Assembly (NCBI RefSeq): GCF_964188315.1
Contig: NC_135661.1
Location: forward strand, 73,656,001 to 73,720,000
DNA length: 64,000 nt
Direction of reading: 5' to 3'
Origin: Podarcis muralis
Taxonomy: Eukaryota
This document shows positions 39,697-46,465 of this stretch, piece after piece. The notes beneath the pieces were generated by a model. That model ran no database searches. It saw only the letters and a list, made by a program, of their open reading frames with translations, and was not told the origin of the DNA. The number at the start of each line of letters is the position of its first letter. Positions within the stretch are counted from its first letter, which is position 1. The position numbers were made by a program, and so were the translations under genes.

Positions 39697-39806
39697 TCAG
39701 TCCCAGGGGAAACTCACACCCACACCCTTAATGTGAGATGGATAAAAATGGTCAAAGATTTCGTTCTGTGCCACTGTGACGTGGTTCTTCCAATCCCCGG
39801 GTAGCC
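39697..39806 (-). CDS. SULT2-like: SULT gene B exon 6
   Basis: (G)[35 protein letters not shown]; 110 nt, ctttcag acceptor; read manually. Confidence 0.9.
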
Positions 39807-42800
39807 CTGAAAGACCACAAGAGAGACTCGTAACCACAAAGATGTTCAGCCAGAATTATTTCAGCACTGGCTTCAGTTCCTGATTAACTTTATCCATTGG
39901 TCAATGGCAGTTCACAGGGAAAGACTCTCCACCCGCCCCGCCCCCTTTGCCTAATGGCCTTTATCTATGGACTCCACCATAAGCTATATTGTTACCTGTC
40001 AGCACAAGTGGCTGTTTAATGTGCATCGAAACACTTCCTCGCTTCCGAGATGAGATGGGCATAGCCTCATTCTTCACTTTATGGAAGGAGGGGTTTTCCG
40101 CCACAGAGTCAATTTGCTGGCTGTTCAGCTCCTTGCCAAGGAACTGGCAGATCTTCTCCACACTCCCTCGAAGGTCCTGCAGAAGGGGAAAGCAAATGAC
40201 TGTGAAACTGATGAAGAGACACACAGAGGGCATTACTGCTAGTTTGTAGGGTGCATTTAACAATACTGATGCCATGGGTGTATTGACCTCTCAGCCACCA
40301 TGGTGAGGAAGCCAGAGTAGAATCCTGTTCTCAAAAAATTGCCTTTCTTTTTGTCTCAGACTGCCTCTTGGCCGGCTCAGCACCGAAGGAGCATCTGAGA
40401 CAGCAGCAGACCTTGGTTGTGTCCACATTAGGTCACTGAGTCCATGTGCAAATTTGTTTGCCTTCATCCAGTTTTGATTTTATGCCTCCAAAATCCGTCC
40501 TGTTGCTTCCTGTCTATACTAGTGGGTGATGCTTGATGGAATGTTTCCATGCTGTGTGTCTCCACACTCCTTCTCAATTAGTATATCCTTGTCCTTCACA
40601 AGTTCTGGAAAACTGAGGTCCATTATAGGCCATTTGTTTATCTGTGTGCACACTTAAAAAAAAAAAAAATCGGGGGGGGGGAGGAATACAAGTTTTTTAA
40701 ACTATCAGATTTGCACAAAATAATAAATTTGTGTGAGGTTCCAAATGTTGTGGGCATTCATGCAAGTATTTGTTTCCCTGTGCACAGACACCTAAAAGAA
40801 AAAGTCTTTTTTTGAAGTAAGAAGTTGAAGAAAATACAAGTAAAAGGAGATATTGAAATAAATACAAAATAGCTAATCTGATGGCATTCCTGGTCTGATG
40901 TGGGACAAAGGAAGGGCACTCTGCACATGATATAAAGCTCTTTTCCATTAAGTGACTTTCCTATTAGGTTTATTTACCACCCTGAGCCCGGTCTTGGCTG
41001 GGGAGGGTGGGGTATAAATAAATTTTATTATTATTATTATTATTAATCATGTAGAGAGGCAGAAAGGAATACTGCGCATGTTTAAATGTATCTAGCAAAC
41101 AGTACCAGAATTTACAAAAACGAAAATGGTGATAACCTTTTCTAAACTTCTTTGAGGGGTTTTTTTTTAAATCAAGTGCTATATAGATTTTATGAAATAG
41201 ATAAGCAATAAACAAGGTGAGGTAACTATGGATGTGTGAATATAACAATGGGCTCATCTACACTTCTGCTTTTCTGCCACTTTCCCCCAGGAAATCCCGC
41301 TGTTTATAGCTGAATTGGAGCAAACATCAGTCAGGTTTTTCTCCAGATGGATGTTTGCTCAGACTTGGCACTAAAGAGCAGGTTTTCCAGGGGAAAGCAA
41401 TGGGGCAAATACAAAACAGCTTGTACTCATGCCTAGAAAGTATGAGTTACAAGCAGAAAACCGGCTGGACCCATGCTTCCTAGCTACGGGACAAGCTGAA
41501 GTGTGGACAACTCCAGGACGAGCACTAAGGTTGGACCACACCTGTTTCAACTCTTCAACCGTGATGAAAAGGAAGTTTTCCCTTTTCTTCATCTGCAGCC
41601 AGCCTTTCACGTGGTCAAACCAGGAGCCATGGGACACTGGAAGAGGGAAACGGAGGCACCAGTAAGCATCAACAGTTGGGAGGTGTGTCAAGGAAGACTT
41701 GGGGAGAACAGACTAACCAAGAAGGTAGCAAGGAACATCTAATGCTTTTGCGTGGCGAGTTCCCGCCCCCCCAGGATAAATAAAGACACGAGACACCATA
41801 ATTTAAGGTTAATTGGGCGAATTAGGCCACAACTTTATTGAATTCAGGAATGAGAGGCATTGGCTTAGGCATTGGTCCTAACGACTATCCGGCTCCAGCC
41901 CATTTGCTGGAGACACGGGGAAGGGTTAACCTTATATCGGGGGAGTCTCCCGCCGAGGCACGTCGACTAGGAGCTCCCCCGTGAATCTCCACCCCCTCCG
42001 TCCCTCCCACTTCCTCATTCATCACTTCTATGGGTGCTGCTAAGCGCCCTCTGTCTTTGAGCTCTTGGCTCTCCTACTTTCAAGGCTCGCCGGGTTCTGG
42101 GAGATGGTGGTGCTTTCTAATGGCAACGTGTCAGCCGGGTGTTGTCCCGGCTATCCCATGATTTTCAAGTTTTACCCCTCATCTTCCTCTGAGCAGCTAC
42201 CTCCCTCAAACCCCTGTTGTAAATCTAGACTGTCTTCCTCTTCCTCCTCCCTGGAAGGGTCAGGATGCAGAGGCGGTCTCCACCATTCCTCCTCTGCCCA
42301 GTCCCTGACACCCAGCAGTATGGCCTGTGGTCAGGGATGATGGCATTTGTAGTCCAGTAACAACTCCAGTGTCACACATTCCTTATAATATTGCCCCAAA
42401 ACACTGAATTTGAGACCCCACTATATCCCCACCCCACACATTCAGGCCATTCACTACTTAAGGACGTTATTAATGTTAAAAGGAAATGAGTTTAACTATC
42501 ATGACACCTCCCACCTTCCTTCTAATTTATCCCTGCTGGAATTACAGTCCTATGATAGGGCTCTAGCAGTGGTTAAAAAGAGAGTCTTCGTGGTACCATG
42601 GAGCAGACATTTGGGCTGCAACAGAGGGGAATGAGCCCAGGGCCATCTTTACCCAGGGGTGCAAGAGGTGCGAGGCACCCAGGCGCCAAATTCTGGGGGT
42701 GCCAGGCGCCCGCTGCTGAAGCAGCCTAAGTTCTTAACTATCTACCTGTTATGAAATAATAAATAATTTTGATCAAGATAGAAAAACAAAATACATATAT

Positions 42801-45800: not shown

Positions 45801-46465
45801 GGTGAGAAGCCAAGATTCTGGGTGGAGGATATTTCAAGGCAGTCTTCATGCCATCAAAAGTCTCGATCCAGGTTATTTTCTCACTGCAAACCCACGAGGG
45901 GTCCCATTCATGCTGGATCGCTGACAAGATCTCTGCCATCCAATGGCCACCTAGGAGGGAGTATAGCAATCATAGGGCTACCTCTTCTCCCACAGGCCTT
46001 TTGGTTCTGCAATGCACACCTTACAACTACTTTGACAACCAAAGCAAACCTCCTGGCAATATGAAATTATTAGTGTTGAGGGGATGTGACTGTTTTAAAT
46101 GTTTTTGAATTGTCAGGTGTTTTCATGTGCATTATTTAAAAAAAAAAATCTTATTATTTTAATATTATTGCTTTAACATTTTTGTGTTTGCTGCCCTGGG
46201 CTCCTATGGGAAGAAGAGCAGGATGGGCATTTAATAAATAACCAAGATAAATGATTTGCCAATGCCAATTCAAATGACCTTTCCCTGTTTATGTTCTGCA
46301 GCTCTCATTCCACACATTGTCTTTCCTACCTGACTTGGGGTAAGAGACACTCAGTAGATCGTCATCCAAGAAGCGAAATTCTTTTTCCAGATAGGTGAGC
46401 GATTCTGCTGAGGACAGCGCTGTGGGGAATAAGATCCCATTGTAGACGAAAAATGGTGATGACAT
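39697..46465 (-). CDS. SULT2-like: SULT2-family sulfotransferase homolog with intact 278-aa ORF but degenerate PAPS-binding motifs (candidate pseudo-enzyme)
   Basis: Six GT-AG exons: 46465-46330, 45950-45754, 43627-43510, 41636-41542, 40176-39996, 39806-39697, with phases identical to the upstream paralog. Motifs: [47 protein letters not shown] at 39338-39333. Confidence 0.88.
39996..40176 (-). CDS. SULT2-like: SULT gene B exon 5
   Basis: [60 protein letters not shown]; 181 nt, the same length as in the paralog. Confidence 0.88.
41542..41636 (-). CDS. SULT2-like: SULT gene B exon 4
   Basis: (V)[31 protein letters not shown]; 95 nt. Confidence 0.92.
42638..43482. mobile_element. hAT-type non-autonomous element containing a solo LTR
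   Basis: TIR CAGGGCCATCTTT / AAAGACAGCCCTG; degenerate 8-bp TSD (AATGAGCC/GGTGAGCC). Confidence 0.6.
42808..43243. mobile_element. Solo LTR
   Basis: TG...CA termini; perfect 5-bp TSD CTAGG (42803-42807, 43244-43248). Confidence 0.7.
43510..43627 (-). CDS. SULT2-like: SULT gene B exon 3
   Basis: [39 protein letters not shown]; 118 nt, 9 nt shorter than the paralog. Confidence 0.9.
45211..45545 (-). mobile_element. Sauria SINE (different subfamily) in SULT B intron 2
   Basis: GGTAAAGGGACCCCTGACCATTAG...TTCCGGGTCATGTGGCCAGCATGAC...TTCGAACC. Confidence 0.85.
45754..45950 (-). CDS. SULT2-like: SULT gene B exon 2
   Basis: (G)[65 protein letters not shown]; 197 nt, 12 nt shorter than the paralog. 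Confidence 0.92.
46330..46465 (-). CDS. SULT2-like: SULT gene B coding exon 1
   Basis: [45 protein letters not shown] + G/gtagga; an upstream acceptor tctttag implies a non-coding exon further 5'. Confidence 0.88.

Follow-up and report, generated by a model that had tools for sequence, protein, structure and literature searches.

The window analysed here is a stretch of 64,000 nucleotides of the Podarcis muralis genome (NC_135661.1, positions 73,656,001 to 73,720,000), which carries two neighbouring sulfotransferase genes on its minus strand. To our knowledge, PAPS dependence is regarded as uniform among cytosolic sulfotransferases, SULT4A1 being one well-known exception whose function is still debated. 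Gene A (50202..56875) is a canonical SULT2 gene of six exons, encoding 284 amino acids with all PAPS and catalytic motifs intact. Gene B (46465-39697), the subject of this study, stands at the end of a SULT2 tandem array and adjoins a NIDO-domain gene. It already carries an annotation, namely that of an ordinary sulfotransferase ('sulfotransferase 2A1-like/2B1-like').

Gene B is composed of six exons, all with AG acceptor and GT donor, and its coding sequence of 837 nt encodes a SULT2-family protein of 278 amino acids with no internal stop. The exon lengths are 136/197/118/95/181/110 nt, compared with 133/209/127/95/181/110 nt in gene A, and both genes share the SULT2-type phases. That is, exons 2 and 3 fall short of the canonical 209 and 127 nt by 12 and 9 nt, respectively. 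The original prediction, a frame-intact gene of six exons in the phases of gene A with these two frame-preserving deficits, is thus borne out. Exon 1 (46330..46465) starts with the ATG (46465-46463) and ends in phase 1. It is followed by exon 2 (45754..45950), exon 3 (43510..43627), exon 4 (41542..41636), exon 5 (39996..40176) and exon 6 (39697..39806), the last of which ends with the stop codon TGA (39699-39697).

The protein is identical to residues 63-340 of a P. muralis RefSeq model. The 62-residue N-terminal extension of this 340-residue isoform derives from an upstream exon on the same strand (48019..48195 by tblastn match, its 5' end possibly lying beyond this range), which is spliced to an acceptor located 9 nt ahead of the gene B ATG. 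Although the upstream exon shows conservation at the DNA level, its reading frame is broken in Lacerta agilis and Zootoca. We therefore rejected the 340-residue isoform as the gene B product, and the upstream exon is most likely untranslated. Four further gene models were recognised as annotation artefacts: in P0003 (Ensembl, P. muralis), exons 1-4 come from another paralog and exons 5-6 from gene B; P0004 (L. agilis) consists of exon 1 from a pseudogene, B', followed by exons 2-6 of gene A; P0007 (Zootoca) runs into intron 4, the full gene B reading frame being intact there; and P0125 (P. lilfordi) fuses gene B to the NIDO gene.

All five junctions of gene B are represented in RNA contigs, so that the predicted splicing of the six exons could be confirmed. 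In run X1, spliced contigs at depth 92-138 carry the joints of exons 2-3 (43625/45752, depth 138, also seen in X9), 3-4 (41636/43510, depth 138) and 4-5 (40175/41541, depth 112, also seen in X3). For the remaining two, the loose end of a contig at 45952 continues into the end of exon 1, and another at 39995 continues into the start of exon 6. The introns have near-zero RNA coverage except at repeats. Run X1 comes from another Podarcis, whose gene B transcript shows seven amino-acid changes and no stop. For P. muralis itself, two contig sets contain gene B at low depth only, and reads of gene B exons were not found in the raw run X21.

As for the family, the Sulfotransfer_1 domain (PF00685) scores 208 bits in gene B and 295 bits in a canonical paralog, against a gathering cut-off of 22. 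The AF2 model (pLDDT 82.9, pTM 0.84) is poorly predicted only at the lid (residues 216-241, pLDDT <50) and at the loop affected by a deletion, and its top Foldseek matches are SULT2B1b and SULT2A1 (TM 0.84-0.87), the best being SULT2B1b 1q1z (TM 0.86). In the tree, gene B falls within the squamate expansion of SULT2, the hydroxysteroid sulfotransferases.

Orthologs and age of the lineage

Orthologs of gene B whose reading frame is intact, whose exon lengths are unchanged and in which every splice site is kept are present in P. raffonei, P. lilfordi, L. agilis and Z. vivipara, which together with P. muralis constitute the five lacertid genomes considered here. Exon 4 is the most conserved, with one variable residue among the five, while exon 5 of Zootoca has two further in-frame deletions. 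In the amphisbaenian Rhineura, an intact syntenic ortholog was identified (clade support 100/97), and the gene order is the same as in lacertids: a canonical SULT gene, then the B-like gene, then the NIDO gene. No stop, frameshift, splice-site loss or intron absence was seen in gene B of these six genomes, so the conservation of the reading frame across orthologs, proposed as a check on the original prediction, does hold.

In the tree, gene A groups with Rhineura P0020 and gene B with Rhineura P0005. Genes A and B thus belong to different clades and are not sister paralogs, and a recent duplication of gene A as the source of gene B is rejected. The gene B clade separated before the lacertid/amphisbaenian split, and the lineage is at least as old as that split. 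Between an origin within Lacertoidea and an earlier one, the AU test did not discriminate (p=0.33).

Cofactor-pocket and catalytic residues

In SULT2A enzymes, the PAP pocket is formed by Lys44, Ser45, Thr47, Trp49, Arg121, Ser129, Tyr184, Lys188, Met243, Arg244 and Lys245, and the catalytic triad is His99/Lys44/Ser129 (PMC8134075); the catalytic and 3'-phosphate role of Ser129 has been described (PMC8134075; PMC4199319). Six of the 11 pocket residues are changed in gene B. Thr47 is replaced by Gly (GGC, 45948-45946) in exon 2, Ser129 by Leu (TTG, 43588-43586) in exon 3, Tyr184 by Val (Val177; GTT, 41559-41557) in exon 4, and Met243-Arg244-Lys245 by Val-Leu-Thr (residues 240-242, 40005-39997; the Leu-Thr codons CTG ACA at 40002-39997) in exon 5, where the lid (Loop 3) is rewritten as well. 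The codons GGC, GTT and CTG ACA had been placed exactly at these positions beforehand.

Among these sites, the Ser129 site (Ser138 in SULT1 numbering) is occupied by Leu in the Rhineura ortholog as in every lacertid B protein, and by Ser in every other SULT2 compared. The original prediction had noted that the Ser eight residues after the Arg of RNPKD was gone; the Ser is indeed lost, by substitution, and the 9-nt in-frame deletion lies a few residues downstream. At the Thr47 site, most lacertids have Gly, and P. lilfordi and Rhineura have Ser. The Rhineura ortholog has in addition Gln at Lys44, Phe at Tyr184, and an insertion where Arg-Lys-Gly would be expected. By comparison, about 115 other tetrapod SULT2 proteins show no or almost no variation in the Ser, Tyr and Arg-Lys at the Ser129, Tyr184 and Arg244-Lys245 sites. 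In exon 2, the 12-nt in-frame deletion, if aligned with the guidance of Rhineura, removes the equivalents of WERS in gene A, and the next Pro is substituted by Thr, so that the WERSP segment taken as deleted is in fact missing only its first four residues; a pairwise alignment of A and B puts the gap one turn earlier.

On the other hand, gene B keeps Lys44 (46336-46334), Ser45, Trp49, the equivalents of His99 (45804-45802) and Arg121 (43612-43610), GDWK and the dimer motif KxxxTVxxxE, the last two in exon 6, and these retentions agree with what had been read from the sequence. In lacertid B proteins, Lys44, His99 and Phe213 are all present, as are the Lys, Ser and Trp of the 5'-PSB motif Lys44-Ser45-x-Thr47-x-Trp49. 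Podarcis has [10 protein letters not shown] as its dimer motif, Lacerta and Zootoca share KHHITVAQNE, and Rhineura has KNYLTVAQSE.

These residue losses exceed chance. Among 63 canonical tetrapod SULT2 proteins, 65 columns reach a conservation of 95% or more. Of these, 15 are broken in gene B and 14 in the Rhineura ortholog (10 of them common to both), compared with 0-4 (median 1) in canonical members. Judged from the sequence, therefore, gene B is probably cofactor-blind, and the expectation that it would be unlikely to use PAPS normally is supported by the pocket changes, Ser129 included.

Since lacertid B proteins keep Lys44, Ser45, Trp49, His99, Arg121 and GDWK, residual or altered activity is possible. 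Gene B could then still be a working sulfotransferase with its pockets remodelled by neofunctionalisation, for a new substrate, a weaker PAPS affinity or a donor lacking the 3'-phosphate, paralleling mouse SULT2A8. The losses fall mostly on the 3'-phosphate contacts and not on the 5'-phosphosulfate loop, Phe213 is kept too, the lid shows very rapid evolution (omega about 1.3), as expected under shifting substrate specificity, and the catalytic base is relocatable in a SULT2A (PMC8134075). However, SULT2A8 retains all PAP-pocket residues and Ser129 (PMC8134075), unlike gene B, the Rhineura ortholog is without the catalytic Lys44, and among about 115 proteins compared there is no active cytosolic SULT that lacks Ser129, Tyr184 and Arg244-Lys245 together. 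We regard a working enzyme as unlikely, although a serious alternative.

Gene A and the maintenance of the reading frame

A dedicated module of enzyme (A) and pseudo-enzyme (B) had been suggested for this locus, in which gene B would be a specific heterodimeric regulator of gene A. The KxxxTVxxxE motif is conserved across the gene B clade, A and B are adjacent in four lacertid genomes and were duplicated as a unit in L. agilis, and words of both genes occur in one RNA sample, X1, the sole hint of co-expression. But gene B is not the sister of gene A, as the separate Rhineura groupings show, and the adjacency is merely the end of a larger tandem array. Moreover, in the duplicated unit of L. agilis B' has decayed beside an intact A', and A-type genes therefore need no paired B copy. 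The module is not supported by these results, and specific regulation of gene A appears very improbable.

Whether gene B is maintained can be seen from its reading frame. With 110 random substitutions, all five lacertid reading frames would remain intact in 0.4% of simulations (p=0.004). Frameshift-size indels occur in the introns at 0.011-0.014 per site, which corresponds to about 10 expected in 837 nt per deep pair, while no coding frameshift was seen across the pairs compared. Here, intron divergence was taken from collinear blastn HSPs, since global MAFFT alignments were inflated by transposon insertions and were dropped. The coding length changes in the gene B lineage (12, 9, 18, 3, 3 and 6 nt) are all multiples of three. 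In the extra copy B', at a divergence of only 1.1%, a stop has already arisen and exon 2 is truncated at its end.

The original prediction had named a dN/dS near 1 as the sign of a young pseudogene. Within lacertids, the omega of gene B is indeed indistinct from 1 (0.84, p=0.44), but this value is uninformative because the intact gene A gives much the same (0.77, also indistinct from 1). Within-lacertid dN/dS was consequently set aside as a test of function, the low divergence leaving it no power, and separating the lid does not rescue it (0.79 for gene B minus the lid, p=0.36). With Rhineura included, omega is 0.69 for the gene B clade, which is below 1 (p=0.014) and above the 0.37 of gene A (p=0.003). 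The amino-acid constraint on gene B is therefore weak, and its non-synonymous divergence is close to the intron divergence.

Gene B is protein-coding and maintained by selection, not a young pseudogene, as the spliced transcripts, the orthologs, the survival of the reading frame and the missing frameshifts jointly support. That it is in early decay, transcribed and functionless with an open frame surviving by chance, is hardly credible: the lacertid omega, the similarity of dN to intron divergence, the many family-invariant residues gone and the truncated or chimeric pipeline models in Zootoca, P. muralis (Ensembl) and P. lilfordi could be so read, but they are already outweighed by the improbable survival on substitutions alone, the absence of frameshifts, the splice sites retained in five genomes, the intact syntenic Rhineura ortholog, the like omega of the intact enzyme gene A and the rapid breakage of the truly redundant B'.

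Proposed history and known systems

The history of gene B may be outlined as follows. The Ser129 of the catalytic triad would have changed to Leu early in the lineage, after which the cofactor pocket would have been eroded independently in lacertids (Thr47 to Gly, Tyr184 to Val, Met243-Arg244-Lys245 to Val-Leu-Thr, deletion of the WERS loop, rewriting of the lid) and in Rhineura (Lys44 to Gln, Tyr184 to Phe, an insertion replacing Arg-Lys-Gly). The fold is retained, as are the P-loop backbone, the His and the dimer motif. The product would be a SULT-fold protein without normal PAPS-dependent sulfonation whose mode of action is binding: it would dimerise through the KTVE interface, with a second copy of itself or with active SULT2 paralogs, or hold a small ligand. 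No particular ligand is favoured, because the acceptor pocket is also remodelled; the earlier idea of a sterol or steroid carrier is likewise weakened by the deleted WERS loop and by the lid, rewritten and predicted to be disordered.

We consider it reasonably probable that gene B is a long-lived, selection-maintained SULT2 which is cofactor-blind and for which a non-catalytic binding role is the likeliest. A bolder proposal can be put forward as speculation, and it is distinctly improbable: besides SULT4A1, cytosolic sulfotransferases would have in the B clade a second non-catalytic lineage of independent origin, kept since before the lacertid/amphisbaenian split, whose cofactor-blind subunits pair through KTVE with active SULT2 paralogs and tune steroid or sterol sulfonation in a tissue of high expression. 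A search of the literature on femoral-gland proteomics for sulfotransferases found nothing relevant.

If the preferred reading of a cofactor-blind binding protein is true, gene B would join SULT4A1 as a second SULT-fold exception, of independent derivation, and in its case the cofactor-contact residues themselves are replaced; it is kept open, spliced and expressed in lacertids and has an intact amphisbaenian ortholog. Two sister lineages in which different residues were eroded after a common Ser129Leu would offer a natural experiment on the SULT fold without its cofactor. In addition, since gene B is annotated as an ordinary sulfotransferase and mis-modelled by several pipelines, the number of functional SULT2 enzymes counted in squamates would be inflated.

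Among known systems, SULT2B1b and SULT2A1 are the best matches of gene B in both sequence and structure (1q1z, E=2.6e-77), and they share with it the P-loop Lys, the catalytic His, the KTVE motif and the six-exon structure and phases of gene A. They differ in the six pocket residues and the WERS loop that gene B lacks, and in the lid. Mouse SULT2A8, a 7-alpha-hydroxy bile acid sulfotransferase, is likewise a paralog from a lineage-specific tandem expansion of SULT2 and deviates from one 'defining' residue (His99Leu), and His48 is found in SULT2A8, gene A and gene B alike (PMC8134075). It is catalytically active without the canonical His99, however, whereas gene B departs in the cofactor pocket (PMC8134075). 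Sulfotransferases are listed in reviews among the families with non-catalytic members (PMC5106787). Pseudoenzymes such as the dead deoxyhypusine synthase paralog and the pseudokinases resemble gene B as selection-maintained paralogs that keep the fold and have lost catalytic or cofactor residues, although the inactivity of gene B is a prediction from its residues. SULT4A1, a brain-specific orphan, is similar to gene B in its conservation over long evolutionary time. Gene B is not its ortholog, since the match to 1zd1 (E=1.8e-26) is far weaker than that to SULT2B1b and Loop 3 is not shortened. SULT4A1 keeps the PAPS-motif residues with a shortened Loop 3 and is extremely conserved, whereas gene B has a Loop 3 of full length (in Podarcis), replaced cofactor-contact residues and a fast rate of evolution (omega 0.7-0.8).

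Structure, annotation and expression of gene B

Gene B, a SULT2-family gene with altered cofactor residues, lies on the minus strand from the ATG at 46465 to the stop at 39697, and its six exons of 136, 197, 118, 95, 181 and 110 nt encode 278 aa. All its introns have GT-AG ends and the 837-nt CDS is uninterrupted, which bears out the original prediction of an open six-exon frame with the same phases as its canonical SULT2 neighbour, gene A. The latter (56875-50202, minus strand; exons of 133, 209, 127, 95, 181 and 110 nt, 284 aa) is located about 3.7 kb upstream of B on the same strand, and no SULT exons beyond those of A and B were found within the window.

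The B protein corresponds to residues 63-340 of the P. muralis RefSeq model 'sulfotransferase 2A1-like isoform X1', and therefore the gene is already annotated, but under an ordinary-enzyme name. The 62-aa N-terminal extension of this 340-aa isoform derives from an upstream exon (48195-48019, minus strand), whose DNA is conserved in all lacertids. The isoform was rejected as the B product, because the frame of the extension is broken in Lacerta and Zootoca. The exon probably belongs to the 5' UTR and would mark a promoter region that B has for itself in the interval separating the two genes, and we take the product to be the 278-aa protein. Annotation pipelines have mis-modelled the gene in other ways, splitting it in two in Zootoca (locus L003), fusing it to the NIDO gene in P. 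lilfordi (locus L006) and, in the Ensembl P. muralis model P0003, producing a chimera of B with another paralog. Two NIDO-domain (alpha-tectorin-like) genes are located downstream of B on the minus strand, at 17272-24523 and 2363-7965; the nearer is a synteny anchor common to Rhineura, and the second is a more divergent paralog with 40-64% identity to the P. raffonei protein. There is an assembly gap of 383 N at 25468-25850.

RNA-derived contigs were aligned to 39990-45989. In RNA run X1, from another Podarcis species, contigs with a word depth of 92-138 join exons 5-4, 4-3 and 3-2 exactly at the predicted boundaries, and their loose ends run into exon 6 and exon 1; therefore, all five B junctions are seen in RNA contigs. 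Relative to the window, the X1 transcript carries seven amino-acid differences and no stop, and intron depth in B is about zero except at repeats. The same joints occur at low depth in two P. muralis contig sets, and one raw P. muralis RNA run gave no B exon reads. Expression of gene B is real but sample-specific. A tRNA-derived SINE-like repeat in B intron 2 (45190-45589) reaches a word depth of 10^4-10^5 in all RNA runs, with many variant letters; this repeat family is either strongly transcribed or present in very many copies.

Cofactor site and predicted fold

The residues of the SULT2A PAP pocket, the contact site of the cofactor PAPS, have been listed, with His99/Lys44/Ser129 named as the catalytic triad (PMC8134075). 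Compared with this list (SULT2A numbering), B keeps Lys44, Ser45, Trp49 and the equivalents of Arg121 and Lys188, and is changed at Thr47 (to Gly), Ser129 (to Leu), Tyr184 (to Val) and Met243-Arg244-Lys245 (to Val-Leu-Thr). The codon coordinates originally given for the altered residues are all exact, and the SHLP His, GDWK and [10 protein letters not shown] are retained as had been described. The Ser reported missing after the RNPKD Arg is indeed gone; it was replaced through a substitution, the 9-nt deletion being situated a short way downstream. As for the supposed deletion of the WERSP segment, a 12-nt deletion, placed with the Rhineura ortholog as a guide, takes out the WERS-equivalent residues.

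Gene A has the full set of canonical residues. Across 120 tetrapod SULT2 proteins that were surveyed, the Ser, Tyr and Arg-Lys sites show little or no variation except in the B clade. When 65 alignment columns with at least 95% conservation in 63 canonical proteins were considered, 15 were found broken in B, compared with 0-4 (median 1) in the canonical proteins. Both A and B, as well as many squamate SULT2 paralogs, carry His48 (KSGTHW and KSGGHW, respectively; B codon 45945-45943, exon 2 match in A), which is the relocated catalytic base in mouse SULT2A8 (PMC8134075).

B scores 208 bits against Pfam Sulfotransfer_1, versus 295 for a canonical paralog, and among solved structures its closest matches are SULT2B1b and SULT2A1, the match to SULT4A1 being far weaker. 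The AlphaFold2 model of B (67 homologs) has a pLDDT of 82.9, only the lid (Loop 3, residues 216-241, pLDDT about 30) and the deletion loop being poorly predicted, and Foldseek places SULT2B1b at the top with a TM of 0.86.

Orthologs, selection and frame maintenance

In P. raffonei, P. lilfordi, Lacerta agilis and Zootoca vivipara the gene order is preserved, with the A-B pair and then the NIDO-domain gene. In each of the four, B is open, its exons match in length, every splice site is present and the residue losses recur, so that the expected ORF conservation is found; the Thr47 site is occupied by Ser in P. lilfordi, and Zootoca has two additional lid deletions of 3 and 6 nt. The best non-lacertid match is a Rhineura floridana protein, whose gene (exons of 139, 209, 127, 95, 199 and 110 nt) follows a canonical SULT and precedes the NIDO gene, as in lacertids, and which forms one clade with lacertid B (support 100/97). 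Therefore, the B lineage is older than the lacertid-amphisbaenian split, an event roughly 100 million years old or older; an AU test did not separate an origin of B within Lacertoidea from an earlier one (p=0.33). The Rhineura ortholog shares Ser129->Leu and Gly61->Trp with lacertid B and has lesions of its own, namely Lys44->Gln, Tyr184->Phe and an 18-nt insertion at the Arg-Lys-Gly site. The cofactor site continued to erode independently in each branch. In Rhineura, the interval separating the canonical SULT from the B-like gene contains an isolated SULT last-exon fragment (L005:6808-6915, on the Rhineura locus), which is interrupted by two in-frame stops and is what is left of another, decayed gene of the array.

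Codon models for the five lacertids gave an omega of 0.84 for B (p=0.44 against 1) and 0.77 for A (p=0.24), a test that lacks power within lacertids, since A, an intact enzyme gene, gives a similar result. With Rhineura included, the values are 0.69 (p=0.014) and 0.37 (p=2e-10), respectively, and the difference is significant (p=0.003). A dN/dS significantly below 1 is thus obtained for B once Rhineura is included, and purifying selection on B is weaker than on A but real. Variation in B is uneven, exon 4 being almost invariant and the lid region changed at more than half its positions.

Frame integrity is stronger evidence for the maintenance of B than omega. When the 110 observed substitutions were distributed at random over the lacertid tree, 0.4% of 20,000 simulations left every one of the five ORFs intact. 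Frameshift-size indels occur at 0.011-0.014 per site in well-aligned intron blocks between Podarcis and Lacerta or Zootoca, a rate that predicts about 10 in B's 837 nt, where zero were observed; all six coding length changes in the B lineage are multiples of three, compared with only about 1/8 of intron indels. An internal control is provided by L. agilis, in which the A-B unit is tandemly duplicated: although the exons of the extra copy B' (L004:10001-14346, on the L. agilis locus) have diverged by only 1.1%, its exon 2 already carries a stop (TCA to TAA) and lacks its final 37 nt together with the splice donor. In the L. agilis RefSeq isoform P0004, exon 1 of B' is joined to exon 2 of the A gene that lies downstream.

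A probable maintained SULT-fold protein and its alternatives

Gene B is not dead, and it is not an ordinary enzyme either; its structure, expression, orthology and ORF maintenance are shown, and the rest of what is said of it here is what we infer. Judged from the sequence comparisons, it is moderately probable that B is a maintained SULT-fold protein no longer doing normal PAPS-dependent sulfonation. B has the features of an old paralog that retained the fold and the dimer motif, lost a catalytic-triad residue in the common ancestor of lacertid and Rhineura B, and then lost different cofactor contacts in each daughter lineage, its open frame being protected while the amino-acid sequence was loosely constrained. 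Such a pattern is what is expected for a pseudoenzyme. The replacement role might be dimerisation via the KTVE interface, or ligand binding; the simple sterol carrier proposed originally is not favoured, since the acceptor pocket is remodelled too.

That B is still an active, neofunctionalised enzyme seems rather unlikely. Lacertid B does retain Lys44, His99, Arg121 and the P-loop, and mouse SULT2A8 is a SULT2 enzyme that tolerates loss of a 'defining' residue (PMC8134075); however, SULT2A8 retains its entire PAP pocket, and Lys44 is also lost in the Rhineura ortholog. A dedicated enzyme/pseudo-enzyme module of A and B, as first proposed, would agree with the conserved A-B order and is quite doubtful, for A is not the sister of B and pairs in the tree with a different Rhineura gene, in another clade. 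A decaying gene that survives by chance could accommodate the lacertid-only omega and is, given the intact frames, highly improbable.

A literature search found no paper on a SULT2 paralog of this kind in reptiles. The closest precedent is SULT4A1, which has no described PAPS-dependent activity and whose crystallised protein bound neither PAPS nor PAP (PMC11275347). However, SULT4A1 retains the cofactor residues, has a short Loop 3 and is very strongly conserved, whereas B is its converse: the lid has its full length, the contact residues have been replaced and the protein evolves fast.
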